A program made the position numbers and the translations under genes. This document shows positions 11,369-24,839 of a stretch of 64,000 bases of DNA, one piece after another. The notes under the pieces were generated by a model, which was not told where the DNA came from, did not search any database, and saw only the letters and a list, made by a program, of their open reading frames with translations. The stretch lies in the sequence record MK308676.1, one strand, 5' to 3'. How positions within the stretch are numbered: position 1 is the stretch's first letter; each line of letters begins with the position of its first letter.

Positions 11369-12889
11369 TTATTCCCCTTTCTTACGATAGGCGTTAGCGT
11401 TCTCGATACCGCCGCTCCATAAAGAACATAGACCCAGTAGTTCGAGGAAGCTTTCTTTCGAATCGATGCTGCGCACGGGAGAGAAGGTAAAGTCTTCACG
11501 ACAATAGTCCTTATCCGCAACAAACTTCATCCACTCGACTTGGTTAGGTAAGTCGTGCGTATGACGTAAGCTACCTAAGGACTGGTTGTATGAAGCCATC
11601 GCCCATAACGCGTAGGTGTGTTCTCCATCACTCTCTACAATATGCTCCCACGTGACATCGCCGTATCCCGGCAAACATGCAACTGGAACAGGCGCATCTT
11701 GAACCTTAGAGAACCGACAAGCTGCCCCGAAGTTTAGCATCTCCGCGGTTAGCTCTTGACAACCTCGAGGTACAAAGAACGCCCCGATGATGCCACTAGG
11801 GCCAGTCTTGTTGCGGCCGACTTCTACTTCCACATAGTGACCATTATGGAGCTCAACAGCACGCGAGATACGAAGGCTGTACGTAGACATGAACTTCAGA
11901 GTCTCAGGCACGCCGCAGAAGTTACCTCCCTTTTTCTCGGTCACTCCTCGAATTATAGGTACCGTACCATTACTACCTAACTGTAACATGGTCTGCTTAC
12001 TTACAGCTAAGACCTCCATTGCCATATGTGCCAACGCCAGCGTTTTCTTATTACCGGTCTCTGACATGTTAGGCATGTACAGTGTAGTGTCGGCCACGGC
12101 GAAGTCACCAGACATAGGTACGATTCCGGCCGAAGCTGCCATGCGTAAGCTGGCCTTATAGCTAGAAAGATTATTAGGTAGAGAAACGCAGTTTTCTAGC
12201 AAATATTCCGAGCGGGCTTGATGTGGGCAATCCATGTAGACGTGAATGGTCATAGGCGATGCAGTTTCCATTATCTGCTTATGCAGCCAATCGGTCAGCA
12301 AACGACGGAACACGATATATTCTTCAGATGAAGATACCAAGATATGACCATTGGGCATACCTACGTATTCTTCGCCAGAAGCGTGTACCTTTCTCATGCC
12401 GAGAAGAACATCCATCCATGTCTTAGTTTGAATCGGCATAGGTAAACGCGGGAACGTAGGGAATACCTGCCCAGCTAACCCTAGAGGCTTTACCTGTCCG
12501 GTATAGAAGTAACCGTTCCATTTAGGGTCTGCGACTATATCCTCAATATCGTCGTAGCGCTCGATATAACGGCAAAGGACACCGACCACGTGATTTAGAA
12601 GATGACTGATTTCAGAGATATTGACCTTATCGTTCATGTAATCGTCCATAGTCACATTGACTTGGTCGTCCCACTTAACGAAAACTTCACACAGGTGGTT
12701 ATTAGCGTTCACGTCATTTACCATAATGACGTCGGCCTTCACGAAATGTTCATCACGTTCGGTGATGATAACGTCTACCGACTTCGTTCCGTAGATGCCG
12801 TAAAAGTTCTCTTTTACAGGAACCAGTTCGGTTTTAAGTGAGCCTTGGTCGTTCTTATGGATAAAGAAAGATACTGGAATCTTTTTCAT
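11369..12889 (-). CDS. UvsX/RecA-fold protein with apparently degenerate P-loop
   Basis: RLPMPIQTKTWMDVLLG...GEEYVGMPNGHILV resembles the RecA/UvsX pre-Walker-A segment; GVPETLKFMSTYSLRI and VEVGRNKTGPSG resemble RecA-family C-terminal strands. No GxxxxGK[ST] found. Confidence 0.45.
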   Translation of the reverse strand: MKKIPVSFFIHKNDQGSLKTELVPVKENFYGIYGTKSVDVIITERDEHFVKADVIMVNDVNANNHLCEVFVKWDDQVNVTMDDYMNDKVNISEISHLLNHVVGVLCRYIERYDDIEDIVADPKWNGYFYTGQVKPLGLAGQVFPTFPRLPMPIQTKTWMDVLLGMRKVHASGEEYVGMPNGHILVSSSEEYIVFRRLLTDWLHKQIMETASPMTIHVYMDCPHQARSEYLLENCVSLPNNLSSYKASLRMAASAGIVPMSGDFAVADTTLYMPNMSETGNKKTLALAHMAMEVLAVSKQTMLQLGSNGTVPIIRGVTEKKGGNFCGVPETLKFMSTYSLRISRAVELHNGHYVEVEVGRNKTGPSGIIGAFFVPRGCQELTAEMLNFGAACRFSKVQDAPVPVACLPGYGDVTWEHIVESDGEHTYALWAMASYNQSLGSLRHTHDLPNQVEWMKFVADKDYCREDFTFSPVRSIDSKESFLELLGLCSLWSGGIENANAYRKKGE

Positions 12890-12894
12890 GTTAG

Positions 12895-13338
12895 TTACTC
12901 CATTCCGTCTAGGATAAGAGGGATGCTCACTTCTAGGTCAACGTCACCGTCTTCAAGATGGTATTTGAAACGTGCCTTACCTAGTTCAGCATCTAGAGGT
13001 GCGTCGTCGTTTAGACAACAGAACCAAGTCGCTCTTAGCTTGCCAGGTTCGTTAAAGTCGCTAAGTTGCAGCGGCGGAAGGTTCGCCCACGTACCGTCAT
13101 TCTCGTCCATGTCTTCCCATTCTTTGTTAAAGATGAAGTGTAGTGTATTTTCAAACATGTTGTTGATGACAGACGTAGTGGTAGTATATGCGTCCAGTTT
13201 AGACGCACGGCCATCGATGTGACAAACGGCTAGGTAGCCAGTATCAACCATCTCTACTGCACCCTTTGCGTGCTCATTTAGAAGTCCTGTCTCAGAAACG
13301 ACTTTAACAGAAACTGGATTTACTTTTAGGCCTTTCAT
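12895..13338 (-). CDS. Hypothetical protein
   Basis: 147-aa ORF, GAGG RBS. Confidence 0.7.
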   Translation of the reverse strand: MKGLKVNPVSVKVVSETGLLNEHAKGAVEMVDTGYLAVCHIDGRASKLDAYTTTTSVINNMFENTLHFIFNKEWEDMDENDGTWANLPPLQLSDFNEPGKLRATWFCCLNDDAPLDAELGKARFKYHLEDGDVDLEVSIPLILDGME

Positions 13339-13408
13339 GTTGTTATCCTCTAATTTTATGTGTCATACTCGACACGTTTTATTCACTACTATAAGGAATA
13401 GTAATTTG

Positions 13409-13960
13409 ATGCAAATGTTCTTAACCGTACTTCGCTTCTTTGTTCTTCTACCTTTCCACTGGCTTGTGACGTTGCTTTGCTACATCCTAGCTCCAGTGTT
13501 ACCTTTAACCGCTATTGGTAAAGAGACGTTACCTAAATGGCTTTCGTGGTTCCAAACGCCTGACGCTCCACTCGATGGAGATTTAGGTTTCCGTTTAGAA
13601 CATGAAGCCAAAGGAACACATCCTTATCTACAGCGCGTCTATTGGTTATGGAGAAATCCAGCATATGGTTTCTCTTGGGGACTCTTAGCTTATCAATCTA
13701 TCAAAGGAATGAAGATTCATACCTTGGGCGATATTAAAGCGAAAGATGACCCTTATAAGGCAGGTTGGTCCATTAGCTGGACTGAGGACAAGAAGGCGTT
13801 TCAAGTACGGGCGTTTGTTCCAACCATCCCTGGTAAGTGTTTAAAGTTTAGGTTCGGTTGGAAACTGCGTTGGTTAGTCAACGACTGTAACGGAATTGCG
13901 AATGGCTCCAAACGTAAGTTCGTCTTCACTTGCAACCCGTTCAAATCTCGCCGTCCTTAA
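13409..13960 (+). CDS. Trp-rich phage membrane-associated protein
   Basis: Hydrophobic N-terminus, WLSWFQTPDAPLDGD and YWLWRNPAYGF motifs. Start moved to 13409 (AAGGAA RBS). Confidence 0.7.
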   Translation: MQMFLTVLRFFVLLPFHWLVTLLCYILAPVLPLTAIGKETLPKWLSWFQTPDAPLDGDLGFRLEHEAKGTHPYLQRVYWLWRNPAYGFSWGLLAYQSIKGMKIHTLGDIKAKDDPYKAGWSISWTEDKKAFQVRAFVPTIPGKCLKFRFGWKLRWLVNDCNGIANGSKRKFVFTCNPFKSRRP

Positions 13961-13974
13961 TTAAGTTAGCCATT

Positions 13975-13998
13975 GGTCTCTTACTTCGGTAAGAGACC
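13975..13998 (+). terminator. Intrinsic terminator
   Basis: GGTCTCTTAC-TTCG-GTAAGAGACC followed by TTTTTT. Confidence 0.85.
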
Positions 13999-14053
13999 TT
14001 TTTTCTTTTTACCCAAAAGAAAAGGCCCTATTCAAAGGGCCCCGTAGGTAGTG

Positions 14054-14878
14054 TTAGTTTTCTAGTGCTTTAACTAGAGTTTTAGCTTCCGGTAGGGTCA
14101 GCTTAGATTCCAATAGGAATTTATCCAGAGCGTCACATACAGGAATCGTAGTGATGACGGTATTGTCCATCGTGATAGGCTGAGTCTTATCACGGACCCA
14201 AAGAATCTTCTTCTGACCATTGCGGAACTCGCGCCCAGTAAGCCCACACTTCTTAGAGCCCATGCGAGCCTTGAAGTTAGAGAACGATAGTGCATATGTG
14301 CCGCCATGGTTCTCTACAAAGACACCGAACTCCATGTATGCGCGTGCTAAGAACAGTTCATTGTTCTCACTGCGCATCTCTTCGCTAAAGACGAAGAACG
14401 GAAGACCTTCTTGATTGAAAGACTTATGTTCCGGGACAATAGCGGCCTTTTCACCAGCGGCTAAAATGGTGGCACCGCAGTAACGTTCGCGAATTCCGCG
14501 TAAAGCTTCAGGGTTGAAGAGTGTTGCACAAAGCTTGTTACGAACTTCCATGAGGTGCTTACGTTGCGGCGTACTCGTATCATGGGACTCGAACAAGCGA
14601 GCTTTCTCTTCATTAGCGTCGTGGCGAACCAGACACACGTTACCTTTCTGATAAGGTAAGGCATTGTCGATACGCTCAATAGTAACACTATCCTCTTTAC
14701 GTTCATCGTTCGAGAGAACCATGGGTAGGCCAGTATAATCACAGACACCGCCGTTGCGACGGAATAATTCACGCCAGTCATCGAGCGACAAGCGGAAACC
14801 AATATCACGAGAGCGCTTGCTTTGTGCTTTCGTTTCGTATTTGCGGTCCACTAATTGCTCATCGTACCATACAGACAT
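14054..14878 (-). CDS. HNH-like (beta-beta-alpha) domain protein with duplicated module, possibly T4 Srd-like
   Basis: RDIGFRLSLDDWRELF...CDYTG...VTIERIDNALPYQKGNVCLV...N; a degenerate second copy follows (YALSFSNFKARMGSKKCGLTG). Confidence 0.5.
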   Translation of the reverse strand: MSVWYDEQLVDRKYETKAQSKRSRDIGFRLSLDDWRELFRRNGGVCDYTGLPMVLSNDERKEDSVTIERIDNALPYQKGNVCLVRHDANEEKARLFESHDTSTPQRKHLMEVRNKLCATLFNPEALRGIRERYCGATILAAGEKAAIVPEHKSFNQEGLPFFVFSEEMRSENNELFLARAYMEFGVFVENHGGTYALSFSNFKARMGSKKCGLTGREFRNGQKKILWVRDKTQPITMDNTVITTIPVCDALDKFLLESKLTLPEAKTLVKALEN

Positions 14879-14962
14879 AATGTCTCCTTTGTTGGTCGTT
14901 GTAAAAAGATTAAGGTAAGAATAAGAAACCCTCATCTCCCGAAAGAGATGAGGGGGATGTTA

Positions 14963-15904
14963 TTAAGGTTGTTTAACAGAGCACTTGAATTGACGCTGGC
15001 CAAAACGAGTCATGCGGTAAGCTGCTAAGAACTCACCGACCAGTTCATATTCGAAGTCAGTATGGCCGTCACCACTGGCAGCAGTTCGAACTAACTTCAT
15101 GTCCCAACGTTTTTCGTATGCGGTCGCTCCGACGGATTCGTCCGAGATTCGAAGAATACGGTCACCGTCAGCATCATAGACGATGACGTCACCGTTCACT
15201 TCAACTGACTTACGGAGTACGTCGTTTTTATCGTACATCAATGTCATGTGCTGTTCGTAATTATCGCCGATTGAAACGAACGAGTAGAAGTCCGCGCCTT
15301 GCGCCGTATGCGTATGCCATTGTCGTGCAGACGAAATGATGTCACCGCTAACGTAGTTTACAAGCGCACTGCTGAACTCATGTCCTTTACCGCGCTTAGC
15401 AGTGAAGGTTGTCTTCGGTCCCTTGGTAGGCGTTGAAATGCAATGTGTTTCAAACCCGTCTTCCGTCATAGTAATGAGATAGTTGAACTTCTCTCTATTT
15501 TCCGTCAGGAAACATTCGTCGGCGGGTTTAGGATTAAGGCTCTTCATTGGCTCCGGATAAGAACCGAAACGACATGGCGCCTCAGGATTCTTAGGGAAAC
15601 GGAACACTTCCTTACCGTTTAGACAATGTAGTGCCAAGTCGAAGTAAACGAAACTTTCGGTCTCGACAAGAGTTCGGCAGAACTTACTGAGAGCAGAGCC
15701 AGTCAGGTGCTCCGCACCAGTTAATTGAGAGAAGTCACATTGGAACAGTTCCCATGCGTTTAGTTTAAGTACGCCCATGCGAAGGATGAAATCCATGTCC
15801 ATCTCAGAGACGTCGCTTAGAATCGCGCGCAGGATAGCTTTAGTTACAGGGACTTTAGTAAGGGCAGACTTAGCTTTAGTTAGGTCAACGGTTTTAATTT
15901 TCAT
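14963..15904 (-). CDS. Hypothetical protein, member of dispersed beta-hairpin-rich paralogue family
   Basis: Helical N-terminus followed by YD/RHS-like hairpins (LMYDKNDVLRK, VYDADGDRIL). Confidence 0.75.
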   Translation of the reverse strand: MKIKTVDLTKAKSALTKVPVTKAILRAILSDVSEMDMDFILRMGVLKLNAWELFQCDFSQLTGAEHLTGSALSKFCRTLVETESFVYFDLALHCLNGKEVFRFPKNPEAPCRFGSYPEPMKSLNPKPADECFLTENREKFNYLITMTEDGFETHCISTPTKGPKTTFTAKRGKGHEFSSALVNYVSGDIISSARQWHTHTAQGADFYSFVSIGDNYEQHMTLMYDKNDVLRKSVEVNGDVIVYDADGDRILRISDESVGATAYEKRWDMKLVRTAASGDGHTDFEYELVGEFLAAYRMTRFGQRQFKCSVKQP

Positions 15905-16009
15905 AATGATATTTCCTTTCAATATCGTTTCTTATTTTAAGAAACATTTAAGTAAAGCTGCTACGTTTTCACAGCCGAGGTACGTCCTCTTTAGGACGCA
16001 TGCATAAAG

Positions 16010-16020
16010 GTAATATAGGT
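16010..16020 (-). promoter_or_regulatory. Putative phage early promoter ACCTATATTAC
   Basis: Exact 11-mer also at 31806 and 45461, each upstream of a minus-strand block; contains TATATTAC, the phiKZ early-promoter consensus as I recall it. Confidence 0.6.
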
Positions 16021-16049
16021 GACAGTTTTTATTGAGTGACAAGCCTTTT

Positions 16050-16058
16050 AATCTTATG
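16050..16058 (+). promoter_or_regulatory. Putative late promoter AATCTTATG
   Basis: Exact 9-mer also at 45486 and 53561, each 30-60 nt upstream of a plus-strand gene; contains TATG, the phiKZ late consensus as I recall it. Confidence 0.45.
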
Positions 16059-16110
16059 GTGCACCAACGCGCTCTATCCCGACTTTGGTCGGCCTAAGAG
16101 GGAATATAAA

Positions 16111-16842
16111 ATGATTACTAATCAAAGCTTCATTACGCAGCTTTATACTTTTAGTAGCGGTACCCTGACGCCTCTCCCTTACTTCATCATAGAGGAACAG
16201 GACTACGACTACTTAAAGGAAACCGCCGATGTTGCAAGCGGACTTTATCCAATTGTAGATGAAGACATCAGTGATGGGATACGTGCCGACACAATCGGCA
16301 TACGCGACGATAAGGTCATGTTCGTACAAGGGAACGGACAAGAGATTGAACTCAAAGTTAATCGCGGCTATGTACCTAAACATAGTGCCATTCGTAACTA
16401 TAGTAAGGAAGACTTCGTTGAAGTTTCTGACGAACTATACGTAAGAAAAGAAGCAGGACGTTCCGCATGGGGTGTTGACGAATGGGTCAAGTTAAAGTCA
16501 GGACACAAGGTCTCTGAGATTTTCTACTACGATGCTCGCACTCAAAGCACGGTAGGTAAACAAGCTACAGGTATCGTGGTAATCGCAGAAGATACTCGAT
16601 TCTTTAACCGAGTCATTGTGCCGGGCGATAGCATCCTAATCGACTTCGCACATGAACTACAAAACTTTTCCTTGCAAGTAGCAGCCAATGGTTCTGTTGA
16701 GTTCACCATTGCTGACAGCATCGATATAGAAGCCATGGAAATTAATGAAGACGGTGAGTTGGTTTTTGAACATGCACTCGCTAGTTCAGACACGGCTAAC
16801 GTCTACGTCGATGACGACGGCTACCTAATCGTAGAAGAATAA
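16111..16842 (+). CDS. Putative virion/tail-associated protein
   Basis: Acidic, beta-rich; first gene of the tailspike island. ATG 16111 after GAGGG RBS. Confidence 0.7.
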   Translation: MITNQSFITQLYTFSSGTLTPLPYFIIEEQDYDYLKETADVASGLYPIVDEDISDGIRADTIGIRDDKVMFVQGNGQEIELKVNRGYVPKHSAIRNYSKEDFVEVSDELYVRKEAGRSAWGVDEWVKLKSGHKVSEIFYYDARTQSTVGKQATGIVVIAEDTRFFNRVIVPGDSILIDFAHELQNFSLQVAANGSVEFTIADSIDIEAMEINEDGELVFEHALASSDTANVYVDDDGYLIVEE

Positions 16843-16855
16843 AGAGGTAAAGGAA

Positions 16856-17410
16856 ATGGTTAAAACAGTAGTAGGTCGCATCCGTGGCGATAAGTACAAC
16901 GGCCATGATGTCAGCCAGGCCTATAAGAAACTAGACGAAGTCTACGATGATGGTAAAGCGTATGTCTGTAAACAGGACGTAGCTGAAAACTCCAACACTC
17001 CTTTATCCGATGAAACTAAATGGCAGCTCTTTGCCACCTTTACTACTTACGGTACCTACTTCACGCATGACTCCAACCGAGCTTATGTCGACGGTGACCA
17101 AGTGTGGATTGATAACAAGGTCTACGTAGCAATCGATGACATTCCAGCAGATAGTGACATCCCGTTAACGGACGATACTAAGTGGGAAGTCCGCCTTACC
17201 GGCGGAGCGGAAAGTTTGCCAGTCGAGTTAAGACATGCGATTGATTTCAGAACCGTAGATGAAGATTTGCGACAACTATCTGAAAACCTTCTTATGGCAG
17301 CTCCTACTAAACCTCCAAGATTGCCCGGACTTATAAAGGTTTGCCCTTCTTTGAGTAAGCGTTATATTTCCGTAGGCACAACAGCGGCTTCTGATTGGGA
17401 GGAATTCTAA
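16856..17410 (+). CDS. Tail-associated protein with two CBM5/12-like repeats
   Basis: Two Y..GD.V....K.Y.....I.....PL.D.TKW repeats; N-terminus paralogous to 18690. Confidence 0.65.
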   Translation: MVKTVVGRIRGDKYNGHDVSQAYKKLDEVYDDGKAYVCKQDVAENSNTPLSDETKWQLFATFTTYGTYFTHDSNRAYVDGDQVWIDNKVYVAIDDIPADSDIPLTDDTKWEVRLTGGAESLPVELRHAIDFRTVDEDLRQLSENLLMAAPTKPPRLPGLIKVCPSLSKRYISVGTTAASDWEEF

Positions 17411-18675
17411 TGACTGATATCTATCTAAAGAAAGTAGCGACCGGTTCTGGTAACGGTTCGGGCTGGGACAATGCTAAAGCGTTTACGGACTCCACGGCTT
17501 TAAGAGTGGACCTAGAGACCTTACGCGCAGGCGATACTCTCTATATCGGTAACGACTTCGGTAAACGTGACTGGCTAGAAACAGACATCCTGATGATAGT
17601 CAACGCTGTGAACGGTACAGAAGATGACCCTATCACTTTCTGTGGCTCTGCCGTAACAGACACTACGGAACTACATGCGGCAGCAAAAGGTAAGGGCCCT
17701 ATCTTCCATGGCGGGGCAGAGGCGCCGATGCGCCTAGGTGACTCAAAAGGAGTAGACTTCCTCAGAGTTGAAAGAGACCACTATAAATTCTTGGGATTAA
17801 ACCTGGTCAACGCAGGTTACTTCCTGACAATACGCAATCGTCCAGTCACTGGGATAACGGTGGCAGACTGTCAGACCTACGGAACGGAATTAGTTTTCTC
17901 TTGCGGCGCAGGAGACTCGGACGTTACTGGCTTGGATGTCTCCAACTTCATAGCTGGTAATGTCTCTGGTGGTTTTGGTCTCTTTAGAAACGGTAAGAAA
18001 TTAAGTTTCAGCGACGTGCATGTCTCCCATAGTGAGGAGACGACTGACGTCTTCGGACTAAAGTTCGGTGCAGCCGGAGATGCGAGCAGCGTAGTCGAAG
18101 AGATACTCGTCCGCGATTCTTCTTTTACAGGCGGCTATAACTTTAACGGCTCGCCTTCTTACGTTCAGGGCGACGGCATTATTGCCGAGATTGGCACTTC
18201 TGAAATAGACATCGACAACGTGCGCATTAGTCTATACGGCGATGCCGCAATTGACCTGAAGTCCACCAATGCCAGAATCAAACGTGCGGACATCCAGAGA
18301 TGTAAGTACGGCATCAAGCTGTGGGGCCTTGGCGAGAACTTAATCGAAAACTCCATCGTGAGTAACTGTTCCTTAGGTGCCATTCAGTGCATCGCTGACA
18401 TCGTGGCTAAGAACAGTACCTTTAAGGGCACGGCCGACAGTAAATGCTTATTGAACCTAACGAAGAATAACCTCGACGGGGATAAGCTGGGCGAACTAAC
18501 CCTGGAAGATTGCGTCCTGGAATATCCAGACCCAAGCCGTCTTATCTACGGCTATGCCGGTAACAAAGTACACATGAAGAACTGCATGGTGAACGGAGTG
18601 CTCATTAAAGAGACTAAGTTCCTTCTACCGGCGCAGGGCTCATTCGGCATTGTAGATGACCTAACTGACTTTTAA
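17410..18675 (+). CDS. Right-handed parallel beta-helix (pectin lyase-like) protein, putative tailspike/depolymerase
   Basis: GNGSGWDNA start; QGDGIIAE...IDNVRISLYGDAAIDLKS...CKYGIKLWG...IENSIVSNC PbH1-like repeats. TAATG coupling with GGAGG RBS. Confidence 0.7.
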   Translation: MTDIYLKKVATGSGNGSGWDNAKAFTDSTALRVDLETLRAGDTLYIGNDFGKRDWLETDILMIVNAVNGTEDDPITFCGSAVTDTTELHAAAKGKGPIFHGGAEAPMRLGDSKGVDFLRVERDHYKFLGLNLVNAGYFLTIRNRPVTGITVADCQTYGTELVFSCGAGDSDVTGLDVSNFIAGNVSGGFGLFRNGKKLSFSDVHVSHSEETTDVFGLKFGAAGDASSVVEEILVRDSSFTGGYNFNGSPSYVQGDGIIAEIGTSEIDIDNVRISLYGDAAIDLKSTNARIKRADIQRCKYGIKLWGLGENLIENSIVSNCSLGAIQCIADIVAKNSTFKGTADSKCLLNLTKNNLDGDKLGELTLEDCVLEYPDPSRLIYGYAGNKVHMKNCMVNGVLIKETKFLLPAQGSFGIVDDLTDF

Positions 18676-18689
18676 GGAAGGAGACTAAC

Positions 18690-19169
18690 ATGTCTAAAAC
18701 TGTTGTGGGTCGAATTCGTGGCGATAAATATAAAGGCCACAATCCGAACCAAATTTACAAGAAGTTGGACGAAGTCTACATTTCAGGTATGGCATTCCTT
18801 TGTCTCGAGGATATAGAGATTAACTCTAATATCCCTTTGACGGATGTTACGAAGTGGCAAGAGTTCGCTTCGCTTGAAACTCTACGTATCCACTACGCAC
18901 ATGACGTGAATGCTGAGTACTTTAAAGACGAGCAGATGTGGGTAGGCGGTAAAGTGTATGTTGCTTTAGCAGATATCCCTGAAAACTCTAATGTAGATTT
19001 AACCGACGACACTAAGTGGGAAGAACTTCTTGCTAGTGAAGCTCTTGCTCCTACGGCTAACGACAAGATTACCATCACAGGCTTTACTGACCTGGGCGAT
19101 GGTAATTGGCAAGTGACGCCCCCCTGCGGGTTACGTACATTACGTACATATTGCTGGCGCCTCGCCTAA
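18690..19169 (+). CDS. CBM-like N-terminal module of second tailspike (5' part of frameshifted gene)
   Basis: Paralogous to 16856 (KTVVGRIRGDKY.GH...YKKLDEVY); sequence becomes unnatural after the C6 run at 19119-19124. Confidence 0.65.
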   Translation: MSKTVVGRIRGDKYKGHNPNQIYKKLDEVYISGMAFLCLEDIEINSNIPLTDVTKWQEFASLETLRIHYAHDVNAEYFKDEQMWVGGKVYVALADIPENSNVDLTDDTKWEELLASEALAPTANDKITITGFTDLGDGNWQVTPPCGLRTLRTYCWRLA

Positions 19170-20649
19170 CTACTTCGCTGAAGTTTCTACTATTGTAGAA
19201 CTTTCTAAGATTGGTGACTGGACGCGTGAAGGCGGACAGCTAACTATCCGTTGGCCTTCTAACCTAAACGACCTGGACGTGTTCCTCACTATGGGTTCTA
19301 GCTCCTCTGTGGCATACTACGGCATGGAAGTAGACGAGCCTGGGGAAATCCATAACCAAAACACTTACGGTGGTTTGCGTGGCTTTACAGTTACGGCTCT
19401 GGCACATCTGTTCCATTGTAAAGCAGAGAATGCTAACTTCCACGGTTTCGATATGCAGTTCCCTGGAGCTACACTGAGTCATTGTGAGAGCCATCACAAC
19501 GGTCAGTGGGACAAAGGCGAGACAGGTAACAATGTCGGTCACGGTGTTCTTATGCGTCGTGGCGGTACAGTGCGCCACCATAAGTCATATTGTCAAGCTG
19601 AAGATGGTTACCAAATTGGTACAGCCGTTCAAGGCAATGTTGCAGAGAACGATGAGTTTACTCTGGAACACTGTGAAGCGTACTACTGTTCTGAGGACAT
19701 GTTCGATATTAAAGAGACAGGTAAGAAATTAACCATTCGTCACTTTAGAGGACATGGCGCACTCGACTCAGCAATCAACTACCACCCGAATGTAGGCTCG
19801 GGTTTAGTAGAGATTACAGATGGGCGCTTCTCAGGCACCGTACAGATGCTTCGCGTCGCTCAGGTTGAATCTAGCATCCCTGCTAAGTTCAACACTGCCC
19901 GTAATGTCTTCGATGCTTCTAACCGTGGCTGGTCAGATAGTTCTGCTCCATGTTTCGATTGGAAGGCCAGTATCGATAATGCAGATGCTTACTTTGTCTC
20001 TATGGCGGACGTTTTCATCGGCGGCGGTACTCGCGGTATCTCTGACAAGCACGTAGTCAACATCAAGGGCGCTGGTAAGGTTAAACTGTTTAACCCGACC
20101 ATTCACGTGCCTTCTACTCCGAACGCAGGAGACGTTTCTGCAATCGGTATGTATGGTACGGCCGCTGTTGAGATTTACAACGCGTGCCTAACTAACTATG
20201 GCGGTGGTACCCGCGGCATCCTTGAAGTTGACGATAACACTCGCAGTATTAAGATTGCAGATTCTGTAATGTATGTCAAAGACGGGGACGACAATACGGT
20301 CTATGTGACTGTTGGTTCGACTACCTATACTAAGGCAGACATTGAAGGTGCAAACTTCGGCGGGGAAGGCAACATCGTAGACGGTAGCGTGGAGCTAACT
20401 AATCTATACATCAAATCGCCTAACTACATGGACGAAGCTAATAACCTACTAGCTCCTCTTTACATTACGCCACATATGGCAAACCACGGTCTAGCTGTGA
20501 ATGCGCCAATGAAAGACGTAATGGGTCTACCATTCAACCACTGGAGTTGGATGGGCGGTTCTGAGAACGTTAGTATGGGCGTTGGCGCTTACCATGCCTA
20601 CAGCGGACGAATGCTCCGTGCTAAGAATTCACATACTCTAGCGAAATAA
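19117..20649 (+). CDS. Beta-helix tailspike/depolymerase (3' part of frameshifted gene)
   Basis: Frame open from 19117, not only from the called GTG at 19279. PbH1-like repeats (HGVLMRRG, EDGYQIG, EDMFDIK, DSAINYH). Confidence 0.65.
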   Translation, partial: RPPAGYVHYVHIAGASPNYFAEVSTIVELSKIGDWTREGGQLTIRWPSNLNDLDVFLTMGSSSSVAYYGMEVDEPGEIHNQNTYGGLRGFTVTALAHLFHCKAENANFHGFDMQFPGATLSHCESHHNGQWDKGETGNNVGHGVLMRRGGTVRHHKSYCQAEDGYQIGTAVQGNVAENDEFTLEHCEAYYCSEDMFDIKETGKKLTIRHFRGHGALDSAINYHPNVGSGLVEITDGRFSGTVQMLRVAQVESSIPAKFNTARNVFDASNRGWSDSSAPCFDWKASIDNADAYFVSMADVFIGGGTRGISDKHVVNIKGAGKVKLFNPTIHVPSTPNAGDVSAIGMYGTAAVEIYNACLTNYGGGTRGILEVDDNTRSIKIADSVMYVKDGDDNTVYVTVGSTTYTKADIEGANFGGEGNIVDGSVELTNLYIKSPNYMDEANNLLAPLYITPHMANHGLAVNAPMKDVMGLPFNHWSWMGGSENVSMGVGAYHAYSGRMLRAKNSHTLAK

Positions 20650-20664
20650 AAAAAAAATAAGAGT

Positions 20665-20688
20665 CCCTACTGGCCGAAGCCAGTAGGG
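20665..20688. terminator. Bidirectional intrinsic terminator
   Basis: CCCTACTGGC-CGAA-GCCAGTAGGG between convergent genes, A-tract before and T-tract after. Confidence 0.85.
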
Positions 20689-20694
20689 GTCTTT

Positions 20695-21006
20695 TTATTC
20701 GTCTTCAGACGGGAACGTCTCGTCGATTACGAGGCCTTGTTTCTTAAGAGACTTCGCTCGAGCCACAGCGACGTCGATGTGACAAACCATGTGACAAAGA
20801 AACTTAGAAGCATCGCGTTTGCCTACCTGGTGAGATTCATACCACCACTTAAAACCGTCTAGGTAAATACATGCGTTCTTATCGCCGTCTTCAGTTACTT
20901 TAAGTAACATTGACTGCGGGATAAAGAAGTCGATGTAAATATGCTCAAGACCTTGCTTCTTGGCTTTCTTGATTTGCTTTTTAACGCGCTTTTTATTACC
21001 TGCCAT
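20695..21006 (-). CDS. Hypothetical protein, basic N-terminus
   Basis: Start moved to MAGNKK at 21006 (GAGG RBS). Confidence 0.65.
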   Translation of the reverse strand: MAGNKKRVKKQIKKAKKQGLEHIYIDFFIPQSMLLKVTEDGDKNACIYLDGFKWWYESHQVGKRDASKFLCHMVCHIDVAVARAKSLKKQGLVIDETFPSEDE

Positions 21007-21043
21007 AATAGGTGCCTCTTTTATCTTAAGTTCGAAATGTTTT

Positions 21044-21334
21044 TTATTTTTGGTCGTGGTCAACCGATATGGTACAAAGGCTTAAACTAAAGTAGACCGT
21101 CTTATGGTCGACGACGCCTTTGTAGACGCGATTGATGCCGTTCTCTGTAAAGTCTTTAACGTCCGTTTTCTTTACCCAAAGATAGTGACTACCGTGTCGT
21201 CCGCAGTCGACGTACATGTGTTGTACCACGCCGCCTAAATCACGGACTGCGTCGCTAACCTCATAAGGCTTCGGGAAAGCGTCCACGTTGAAAGAAGATA
21301 GGCACAGAAGTAGTAAAGCGAATAATTTTTCCAT
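21044..21334 (-). CDS. Small secreted/periplasmic protein
   Basis: Signal-peptide-like MEKLFALLLLCLSSFNVDA; two Cys in the mature part. Confidence 0.65.
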   Translation of the reverse strand: MEKLFALLLLCLSSFNVDAFPKPYEVSDAVRDLGGVVQHMYVDCGRHGSHYLWVKKTDVKDFTENGINRVYKGVVDHKTVYFSLSLCTISVDHDQK

Positions 21335-21398
21335 GGTGTTCTCTCTTTAAGATAGAAATGATTAAGCTCCCTCTCCCGAAGGAGAAGGAGTACTTAGT

Positions 21399-23231
21399 TT
21401 ATACGGTGAACTTGCTTAGAGCAACACCTTGCTCTTCACATAGTTCCATTACTTCACCCAGTTCGTCTTTAGACTTAGCAGAGCCGTCAGAGATTTCCTG
21501 AGATAGGTCTTTCACTCGAGTAGCGTTGAGGTTAATCTCATTGCTTACAAGCGATTGCTGTTCTGATGCTGTAGCGGTCTGAATAGACATGCTGGTAATC
21601 TCAGAGACAGCTTTAGAGATGTCGTTAAGGTTAGAAGCGGCAACAGCTGCTTTATCAATTGCCCCATCCGTAGAAGCCTTACCGTCCTCAATGGTCTCAA
21701 AGACTTCTTGAGCGTGGTTAGTAATCTCTTCTAGAATGGTATTGATTTGAACTGTGCTTTCTTGCGTATCCTTGGCTAGCTTACGAACTTCGTCTGCTAC
21801 CACTGCAAAACCTCGACCTGCATCGCCTGCACGTGCTGCTTCAATTGCTGCGTTAAGTGCAAGTAAGTTGGTTTGGTCTGCCACGCCAGAAATAACTTCC
21901 AGTACTTCGGTGATACTTGCCGTAGAACCGATTAGGTTAGTAGTAGTGTTTACAGCGCTCTCCATTACTTCACCTACGTGAGTAATAGCCGCTGATGTAG
22001 CTTCTACAGAATCCAGACCAGAACGTACAGAGGTTTCTGCCTCTTCTGTACTAGCCGCGGTAGATTGAGCATTAGATGCAATCTCTACGCTAGATGCTGC
22101 CATCTCTTCCATAGCTGAAGCTAGTGACTCTAGCTCTGCCATTTGTTCAGTTACATTGCTTACGTTCTGAGTAGACACTGCTCCCACAGAGATGACTGCA
22201 TTACTAATGCCGCCAGATATCTCTTTAAGGCGCTGTACGTCTTTCTGAAGGTTCGCAGCAAACGTATTGACAGATTGTGCCATGGCAGCAAACTCTTCGT
22301 CAGAGTCTTCGCTAATGCGTTTAGTGAGGTCTGCTTCACCAGAAGCTAAATCCTGTAAAGCATTGCGTAGTTCTTGAAGAGGACGCATTAGGTACATCGC
22401 TGTTACAATAGCTAGACCAGATACTACAGCAGTGGTAATACCGGCAATGATAAGTAGTAGTACAAGTAAGTCTTTGACTGGCTGCTCAATAACAGAAGTC
22501 GGTTTCTTAACGTCTACTACCCAACCCGCAGAAGGAATAGTAACTAACACAGTAGTCATTTCTTCTTTAGGTGCTTTCTGCTGACGGATGTTCTTGCCGA
22601 TTAAGTACTCGTCTTTATGTGCAATGATGTTACTCGTTGCTTTACTGTAAAGGACAAGTTCCGTACCGTTAACATGAGCAATGCGGTTTAACTCATCGCC
22701 TAGTTCGCCTAGGTTAGTATCAAAGAACACAGCACCGTCATTCTTACCGTTCTTGTAAACAGGAATGGCAATTGACGTTACGAGTTCTTGAGTGGCTAAG
22801 TCTACGTACGGTTCAGTTTGGATAGGTTTACCCGCAGCTATTGAGTCCTTGTACCAGTCGCGTGTACGGCCGTCGTAGTTCGCGGGCATACGGCTTTCCG
22901 GTACAGACGTAGTAAACTCACCTTCGCGGTTTACATAACCCACCATGTCGAAAGCATTCAGTAGAGTAGCTCCCTTTAATAGGTGGGCTGCTTCTTCCAT
23001 ACTTTCGGTTTTGGATAGACCATCTGCGATAGCTTTAGCTAAAGTCATGTTGCCGTCTAACTGTCCCGTAATACGAGAAGCCATGTTGTCGGCAGTGAGT
23101 GAAAGAGAATCTTTAGCATTCTCTAGAATCTGTTCTTTCTCGACTTGGTAAGTAACGCCGGTCAGAACACCGCCCATAATCAATGGGATAATAATAAATG
23201 ATGCGAATAACTTAGTCTTAAAATTAAACAT
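21399..23231 (-). CDS. mcp: Methyl-accepting chemotaxis protein (TM1-dCache_1-TM2-HAMP-signalling domain)
   Basis: Signalling tip [37 protein letters not shown]-type (here VADQTNLL...); [28 protein letters not shown]; methylation EE/EQ pairs; dCache YDGRTRDWY...EPYVD...FFD. Start moved to 23231 (GGAG RBS). Confidence 0.95.
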
Positions 23232-23266
23232 GATAGTTCTCCGAAATACAAAAAGGAAAAGAAGCA

Positions 23267-23296
23267 ACAGTAGCCAACCGCATGGTTGGCTACTGT
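23267..23296 (-). terminator. Hairpin/terminator between YadA-like gene and MCP
   Basis: ACAGTAGCCAAC-CGCATG-GTTGGCTACTGT; T-rich run follows on the minus strand. Confidence 0.65.
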
Positions 23297-23331
23297 ATAT
23301 GCTTACAGGTAGCTCTCTTGAGAGCTTGTCA

Positions 23332-23772
23332 TTAGTAGCTGTATGCTACGCCAGCACCTGCTGCTACATCTTCAAAGTCGCCGCTCACGATTGTAGCTGC
23401 AACGTGAACTTTACCAGTCCAGTTTTCGTTGATGCGGTATGCGCCACCGATTGCTAGAGCTTGTGCGTCACCTGCTGTACCAACACCGAAACCAAACTTA
23501 CCAGTTTCAGCGTCAATAGTGGTGTGTGCTTTAGCGCCGTTACCTAGGTCAGTCTCAGTACGGATTACTGAGTCGTTACTTTCCACAGGCATGTTAGCTA
23601 GACGTGCAGCTTCTAGGCGAGCGCCGCGTTCTAGTTCTAGGTTGGCGTAGAAGTCGTCAGAGACTTCAGTCATTACAGTTGCGTCAACAACGTTAGAGTT
23701 GCAGATACAGTTGTCGTTTGCGATAGCAGTAAAAGAAGTAGATAGTAGTAGGGCGATTAGTAGGTTTTTCAT
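23332..23772 (-). CDS. Minimal YadA-like trimeric autotransporter (signal peptide, short stalk, 4-strand anchor)
   Basis: [18 protein letters not shown] signal; A..AA.LA.MP linker helix; FGFGVG...[14 protein letters not shown]...AGAGVAYSY anchor ending in an aromatic residue. Confidence 0.8.
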
Positions 23773-23897
23773 AATAAATTCTCCGATATGAAAAAGTACC
23801 CTAACTGCATCAACGCAGTTAGGGCATATGGCAAAGATTAAAGGGACTTAATTGTCCAAGCTCACTATGATAATATGGGTTTTAGATTTCCTTGAAA

Positions 23898-24839
23898 TCA
23901 AATCTCCACGTCATCGTCAGGCTTCCACCCGAAGATAAGTTCTTTTCTAGCGTTCTCTAGCGCATTGAAATCAGGCAAGCCGTTAATAGGGAAACGCATG
24001 CTGGTACTGTAAGAAGCATCGCCTTCATAGATGCGGTCTACAACCATACAAGAGCCATTAAGGCAGTAATAGCCCACGCGGCGGCCCTTATCATCACGCA
24101 AGGTAATCTCTTTGAGGTCACCCGCCAGAGAAGTAAAGATAGAACCATCGCCTACGGAAAGGAATGACTTCGGAAACTCTCCGTCTTCACGTACCTGATG
24201 GCGGTATCTTAAATCGCCCGCATGGAAGCGGTCACGGATAAAGATAGTCGGTAACGCATCTTTATGACTAATCTCTAACTTCTCAGTGCGGCCCGCCTTA
24301 CTTAGCACTTTAACGCATTCTTCAGGTGCTACTGGCGGCTCATGTACTGCTTCCGCTAACTCTCCATTATCGTCCCAAGTTTGACGAACCGTTGTTTTAA
24401 GTTCGCCATCGCAATACCATTCTCTTAGCACAAGACGTTTACCGCCACAGGAGAAAAGTTTCACACAGAGAACCTCACGGTCTTCGTGTGTGTATTTGGT
24501 CTCCACGCGATAGATGCCCGCACCTTCATGAGTAATAGTACGTACTGCTTCCGTTACTTCAGGGCGGTCGTTAAAGACTAGCGTTGCCTGGGCGTCCGGT
24601 AAGCAGAAATGGAAAGCTTTAACGTGCTGACCGGTTTCATCCCACGTACACCATGCACCCTTCTCTAATACTTCGGCTACTTGGTCTACCCAAGAACCTT
24701 CAGCTAGAGCCGGCATATGGCGAAACTGAATTAGTGCGTGTTCGCCCATATGGTTTCGCATGACCTCCCCTGTTTGCGGAAGGTCTAGCAACTCTAAGAT
24801 TACTGGCGGGATTGAATATAACATATCGTTATCCGACAT
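23898..24839 (-). CDS. Hypothetical protein, dispersed paralogue family
   Basis: 313 aa; hairpin repeats (TWDDNGELAE, LRDDKGRRVG). Confidence 0.75.
   Translation of the reverse strand: MSDNDMLYSIPPVILELLDLPQTGEVMRNHMGEHALIQFRHMPALAEGSWVDQVAEVLEKGAWCTWDETGQHVKAFHFCLPDAQATLVFNDRPEVTEAVRTITHEGAGIYRVETKYTHEDREVLCVKLFSCGGKRLVLREWYCDGELKTTVRQTWDDNGELAEAVHEPPVAPEECVKVLSKAGRTEKLEISHKDALPTIFIRDRFHAGDLRYRHQVREDGEFPKSFLSVGDGSIFTSLAGDLKEITLRDDKGRRVGYYCLNGSCMVVDRIYEGDASYSTSMRFPINGLPDFNALENARKELIFGWKPDDDVEI

Follow-up and report, generated by a model that had tools for sequence, protein, structure and literature searches.

Organization of the locus

The region analysed here is a 64,000-nt window of the genome of Vibrio phage vB_VmeM-Yong MS31 (MK308676.1), a jumbo phage of 290,537 bp with Vibrio mediterranei as its host. 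Positions are given in window coordinates (record position minus 186,000), and the features of the split gene and of the gene pair next to it lie on the plus strand. In an earlier report (PMC7765460), the Yong phages appear as comparators.

The 5′ fragment of the split gene (18690–19169) encodes a protein of 159 aa (GenBank QAX96833) that terminates in ...NWQVTPPCGLRTLRTYCWRLA*. Residues 1–145 of QAX96833 are genuine, and the final 14 (CGLRTLRTYCWRLA) are translated out of frame. The fragment contains two N-terminal repeats of ~55 aa each (18711–19043), which resemble CBM5/12 modules at a sub-threshold level. The frame is lost at a run of six cytosines (C6, 19119–19124), flanked by ACG and TGC and read as ACG CCC CCC TGC. 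Such runs are rare, with three in the whole 290-kb genome; the other two, at MS31 record positions 98215–98243, are separated by 17 nt and lie in a stretch rich in G+C (...GGGAGGATGA-C6-TCCTGCTCC...), which possibly belongs to a structured RNA or hairpin.

The +1 frame opens at 19117, right after the TGA at 19114–19116, and continues for 510 codons to the stop at 20649, encompassing a conserved linker and a beta-helix-like body. The GenBank call for this 3′ half (QAX96834) starts only at the ATG at 19291. When the first CCCC is read as one proline, the two frames join into a protein of 652 aa, and the predicted junction peptide of such read-through in MS31 is ...NWQVTPPAGYVH.... The first candidate restarts in the +1 frame, GTG 19279 and ATG 19291 (19279–19293), are not preceded by a Shine–Dalgarno sequence, in contrast to the four neighbouring starts at 16111, 16856, 17410 and 18690, and initiation at either would forfeit at least 54 conserved residues together with the entire N-module. 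The run is followed by a 9-nt tandem duplication (two copies of TTACGTACA, 19131–19148), which is in frame and encodes YVH-YVH in the +1 frame. The initial annotation, made from the nucleotide sequence, had described this layout accurately, from the C6 run that closes ORF 18690 at 19169 and the open +1 frame yielding a product of about 650 aa upon skipping of one C, to the downstream start devoid of a good ribosome-binding site and the 9-nt duplication. A recent insertion of the duplication can be dismissed: it is identical in all isolates that carry the gene, entails no length change relative to the homologues, and YVH-YVH aligns without gaps to WVH-SLH of the relatives.

Immediately upstream lies a pair of genes (16856–18675) in which the same architecture is genuinely divided between two genes. 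The first gene (16856–17410) encodes a stand-alone N-module protein of 184 aa, which shares 56% identity with the corresponding module of the split gene, and the second (17410–18675) encodes a beta-helix protein of 421 aa (Pfam Beta_helix, E 1.3e-6); the two overlap as TAATG, and the second is equipped with its own GGGAGGA Shine–Dalgarno sequence. The beta-helix bodies encoded from 17410 and 19117 were considered as paralogues and rejected as such, because no similarity between them is detectable, the N-modules alone being held in common. As the sequences of the two bodies are unrelated, the N-module common to both loci resembles an exchangeable adaptor in its behaviour; it could be a common virion-anchor module as readily as a carbohydrate-binding one.

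Comparison of near-identical isolates

A blastn search of the phage collection with the segment 15900–20700 retrieved MS31 itself (100%) and the sister isolates XC31 (MK308674) and XC32 (MK308675), both at 99.9%. Where MS31 has QAX96833 and QAX96834, each of the sisters carries C5 and a single annotated CDS of 652 aa (QAX96198 and QAX96516, respectively), and their alignment with MS31 shows exactly one base fewer, inside the C run. MS31 and its sister isolates are 99.997% identical. Over 290 kb, MS31 and XC31 are separated by seven difference events, namely, four SNPs and three homopolymer indels (A10/A9, A12/A10 and C6/C5), and three of the seven fall within 53 bp, at the split gene. Apart from the extra C, these are the SNPs at 19067 (G/C, Lys/Asn) and 19070 (T/C, synonymous), located 49–52 nt upstream of it; there are no other differences from XC31 and XC32 in 50 kb of the window. 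The two A runs, at MS31 record positions 79648 and 276763, measure A10 and A12 in both MS31 and MS32, A9 and A10 in XC31, and A9 and A11 in XC32.

Among public sequencing runs, none derives from the MS31 isolate, and one partial source was found, a 2024 seawater metagenome with 11% of the words. A contig of 154 nt from this metagenome, covering 19055–19209 at a depth of ~3, has no mismatches to MS31 and leaves out one base at 19119, that is, it combines the MS31-type SNPs with C5. Accordingly, the haplotype with the MS31 SNPs and C5 occurs in nature, because the contig carries both. The SNPs at 19067 and 19070 are thus likely to be real polymorphisms, for which the contig, at its depth of ~3, is supporting evidence rather than proof. 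In exact scans with a junction pattern allowing C5 to C7, no matches were obtained among IMG/VR viral contigs or JGI metagenome contigs. Judging from the copies compared, the MS31 record alone has C6.

The sibling isolate MS32 (MK308677, 278,116 bp) belongs to the MS31 lineage, from which it differs by one SNP elsewhere in the genome, with the same A10 and A12 run lengths. It is missing a 12.4-kb stretch (~11604–24000) that includes the whole split gene. The deletion takes both beta-helix genes, a DUF7338 gene and a chemoreceptor cassette, and its junction is formed by imperfect repeats of ~21 bp at 11583–11603 and 24001–24021 (record 197583–210021). The DUF7338 gene, at 13337–13960, encodes a protein of 207 aa (E 1.2e-51). 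The deletion joins two unrelated minus-strand genes; recombination between paralogous flanking genes was considered as its cause and discarded, as the flanking proteins are unrelated and the junction is merely the imperfect ~21-bp repeat. Because MS32 lacks the split gene entirely and was nevertheless deposited as a complete phage genome, the gene is dispensable.

Distant homologues read through the shift site

Beyond the Yong phages, a tblastn search yielded a sole further phage homologue, BONAISHI ORF192c, a single CDS of 701 aa, the N-terminus of which holds three copies of the ~55-aa repeat, compared with two in the N-module of MS31. BONAISHI ORF190 and ORF191 were examined as orthologues of the neighbouring pair and display no similarity to it. 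A word search added two proteins, P0003 (643 aa, JGI metagenome) and P0004 (613 aa, a prophage of Alishewanella sp. d11), each with 43% identity to the +1-frame translation across 99% of its length. All three homologues are single ORFs, and their alignment is gap-free across the shift site (...SEFVWEHDRPTGWVHSLHLAG... in P0003 versus ...GDGNWQVTPPAGYVHYVHIAG... in XC31). At the equivalent codons, the three relatives have AGG CCT ACT, CGA CCT AGT or ATC GAA GTT, with no homopolymer or slippery run.

Since gap-free homology to three independent single-ORF relatives spans the shift site, the join in MS31 is not a chance open frame. The uninterrupted homology further implies that the conserved C-terminal unit begins ~15 residues before the C run; hence, the frameshift lies inside a conserved segment and not at a domain boundary. 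The comparison with orthologues that the initial annotation had proposed as a check therefore finds the gene whole in XC31, XC32, BONAISHI, P0003 and P0004, and bears out one protein of ~650 aa as the intended product. On this comparative evidence, the gene at 18690–20649 is normally one ORF of 652 codons.

Predicted nature of the full-length product

The 652-aa product is best explained as an accessory tail-spike-like protein, in which two ~55-aa repeats precede a conserved linker that leads into a body resembling a right-handed beta-helix. The Pfam Beta_helix profile matches the +1-frame part below the cut-off (E 0.022), and the feature neighbours in the ESM Atlas are all Beta_helix-type families (scores 0.90–0.94). 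For structure prediction, we used the read-through protein in which one CCCC is taken as a single proline (P0005), a sequence employed solely for folding; it corresponds to the natural full-length form and differs from the XC31 protein in one residue. The AlphaFold2 model, built from an alignment of three sequences, is poor overall (mean pLDDT 47.9), with a core (residues 240–575) consisting of a stack of short strands or beta rungs at pLDDT ~50–85. Its top Foldseek matches, all of them beta-helix proteins at E 2e-3 or weaker, include phi29 gp12, Klebsiella phage depolymerases, CBA120 TSP3, AlgE4 and polysaccharide lyases. In BFVD, an entry of 652 aa with 93% identity, presumably the XC-type protein itself, is followed by phage pectate-lyase and tail-spike entries. 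Neither half of the gene has a family in PHROGs.

A location within a tail or baseplate module is evident in the relatives and not in MS31 itself. The gene for P0003 comes after a Sheath_initiator gene, and the P0003 N-terminus bears a TELDNNF motif, which we take to be a tail-fibre-type N-terminal motif. P0004 closes the tail module of a siphovirus-type prophage, downstream of the genes for the tube, chaperones, tape measure, DUF1833 and a hub-sized protein of 913 aa. It is the last large gene of that module, which is inserted next to thrS-infC-rpmI-rplT (CP186547.1; L067 10001–11842). P0004, the closest cellular homologue (43% identity), has a coiled-coil-like N-terminus in place of the repeats.

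The N-module is less readily assigned. CBM_5_12 matches the paralogous N-module with E 0.0029 and 18.1 bits, versus a cut-off of 26.2 bits; three of the seven N-module repeats match CBM5/12, all with E of at least 0.005; and a search of the PDB with the repeat profile pointed to the chitin-binding domain of chitinase A1 (1ED7) at E 0.45. These values indicate a resemblance to CBM5/12 rather than membership. Thus, of the two labels given to the halves in the initial annotation, the beta-helix tailspike is moderately supported, whereas the carbohydrate-binding module is reduced to sub-threshold matches; ‘beta-helix tail spike or fibre’ is a reasonable, albeit unproven, name for the protein.

Origin of the split reading frame

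The ancestral state of the gene is a single ORF, and the initial annotation had offered three explanations for its interruption: programmed frameshifting, phase variation through homopolymer slippage, or a sequencing error. Under the first of these, +1 frameshifting at CCC-CCC-U would yield the 159-aa N-module protein and the 652-aa fusion in a set ratio. Slippage of proline tRNA on CCC-N is established, and CCC-C permits tRNA-Pro to re-pair in the +1 frame, from CCC to CCC or CCT, by a shift of one base; moreover, MS31 does employ a stand-alone N-module protein in the neighbouring pair (16856/17410), and the structural genes of Listeria phage PSA provide a precedent for +1 frameshifting. As far as is known, phage structural-gene cases of this kind, PSA among them, are conserved and use a stop as the hungry codon. 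At the MS31 site, by contrast, the re-pairing P-site codon has no such company: the A-site codon is an ordinary UGC (Cys), neither a stop nor a slow or hungry codon, no Shine–Dalgarno-like stimulator is visible just before the run, and the RNA fold of the 126 nt from the run onward is not significant (z = −1.0; 32 of 200 shuffled sequences fold as well). Furthermore, the two-frame layout is confined to MS31, with the near-identical sisters in frame and every distant homologue a single ORF without a slippery run, and the 0-frame product finishes with 14 junk residues within a conserved segment. The comparison effectively refutes programmed frameshifting at C6, which we regard as extremely improbable.

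Beyond programmed frameshifting, a base-calling or assembly error and a real one-base slippage insertion in this isolate both survive as explanations; true phase variation with a tract of 5–6 bases is unlikely. If C5/C6 were a contingency locus, it would turn an accessory receptor-binding protein off and on in phage populations. The tract does vary in length between near-identical isolates inside a putative receptor-binding gene, C6 runs are scarce in the genome, and the independent loss of the same gene in MS32 suggests fluctuating selection. Known contingency tracts, however, comprise ~8 or more bases, and the run of 5–6 bases, C6 in MS31 versus C5 in XC31, XC32 and the metagenome contig (all consensus sequences rather than reads), is well below hypermutation lengths. 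The tract amounts simply to two proline codons, the relatives lack any run at the site, and one off-variant alone has been seen, so we consider phase-variation-like switching very unlikely. We consider equally unlikely a specific form of it, in which the C5/C6 tract would really switch an accessory depolymerase-type spike, reversibly and at low frequency, with MS31 as the ‘off’ state, leaky via spontaneous +1 slippage of tRNA-Pro on CCC-CCC. Were such a switch to exist, selection on some Vibrio mediterranei hosts would favour losing the spike, through the frameshift of MS31 or the deletion of MS32, and selection on others would oppose it.

A sequencing or assembly error would mean that MS31 truly has C5 and an intact 652-aa gene, the extra C being a homopolymer miscall in the consensus. 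C6 is present in one record and all other copies have C5, including the seawater contig with the MS31-type SNPs; every indel between the isolates falls in a homopolymer, a signature that sequencing errors share; and the difference between XC31 (A10) and XC32 (A11) at record position 276763 perhaps reflects calling noise. Nevertheless, most platforms have little trouble with a run of 6 bases at consensus depth, and homopolymer calling appears reliable, given that the much harder A10 and A12 runs are identical in MS31 and MS32, two genomes that were deposited separately, although their assembly may not have been independent. A random miscall is further disfavoured because the extra C clusters with two SNPs confirmed by the seawater contig; we estimate the chance of such an error within 53 bp of two of the four SNPs of the genome at ~1 in 1000. 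Repeated mutations in a gene of the receptor-binding type are, for their part, common in phage evolution, and loss of this gene is demonstrably tolerated, as the MS32 deletion attests. An error in the record, therefore, is possible, yet rather unlikely.

The explanation that we favour, with moderate confidence, is that C6 is a real, recent loss-of-function insertion in MS31, present in the phage DNA and not just in the record. The addition of one C to the C5 run, probably by replication slippage, would have converted CCC-CCT into CCC-CCC-T. The ribosome would then read 14 wrong residues in MS31 and stop at 19169, leaving the remaining 1.5 kb without a usable start. The predicted product is a 159-aa N-terminal stub containing both repeats and the 14 wrong residues, with the full-length protein made in trace amounts at most. 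Any such trace would arise where tRNA-Pro slips spontaneously into the +1 frame on CCC-C, an event that in bacteria occurs at a rate on the order of a percent or less. MS31 would tolerate the loss since it does not need the gene on its propagation host.

These results remove a false candidate for programmed frameshifting, and the locus carries little weight as a case of recoding. For annotation, QAX96833 and QAX96834 should be considered as the halves of a gene that is whole in QAX96198 and QAX96516. In addition, the four near-identical jumbo phages constitute a natural allelic series, with an intact gene in XC31 and XC32, a frameshifted one in MS31 and a deletion in MS32, which could be used to study the role of the accessory beta-helix protein in adsorption and host range on Vibrio mediterranei.

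Relation to known systems

The MS31 site shares a re-pairing P-site codon, be it proline or another, and a longer +1 product with E. coli prfB and with the structural genes of Listeria phage PSA, for which +1 frameshifting is documented (Zimmer et al., 2003, PMID 14507382, as cited in PMC4598591). Unlike those systems, it has no A-site stop or rare codon, no stimulator and no conservation, and its orthologues are in frame. A different parallel is offered by the Fletchervirus phages of Campylobacter, where polyG tracts located in receptor-binding genes are reported to be hypermutable (Sorensen et al., 2021, Cell Rep 35:109214, as cited in PMC10877375). In both cases, a homopolymer resides in a putative receptor-binding gene and synthesis of the full protein depends on the length of the tract, but the MS31 tract is 5–6 bases long, is not conserved in relatives and is known here from consensus sequences.

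With respect to the protein, right-handed beta-helix tailspikes and depolymerases, such as phi29 gp12, CBA120 TSP3 and the Klebsiella phage capsule depolymerases, are what the model core matches best in fold, albeit weakly, and homologues of the split gene occupy the tail-fibre position of prophage and baseplate modules. The split gene differs from these tailspikes in that its Pfam Beta_helix match is below the cut-off (E 0.022), its model reaches a mean pLDDT of 48, and its product is known here from sequence and a model. With respect to the mutation, the closest likeness is to the frameshift-inactivated alleles of accessory tail fibres or tailspikes in laboratory or natural phage isolates. 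There, too, a gene of the receptor-binding type, intact in close relatives and dispensable on the propagation host, is cut short by the gain or loss of one base in a short homopolymer. Nothing essential sets MS31 apart from this class of pseudogenised alleles, the local addition being the 12.4-kb loss of the same gene in MS32. Taken together, the comparisons identify the split gene as either a frameshift allele of an ordinary kind or an error in base calling.
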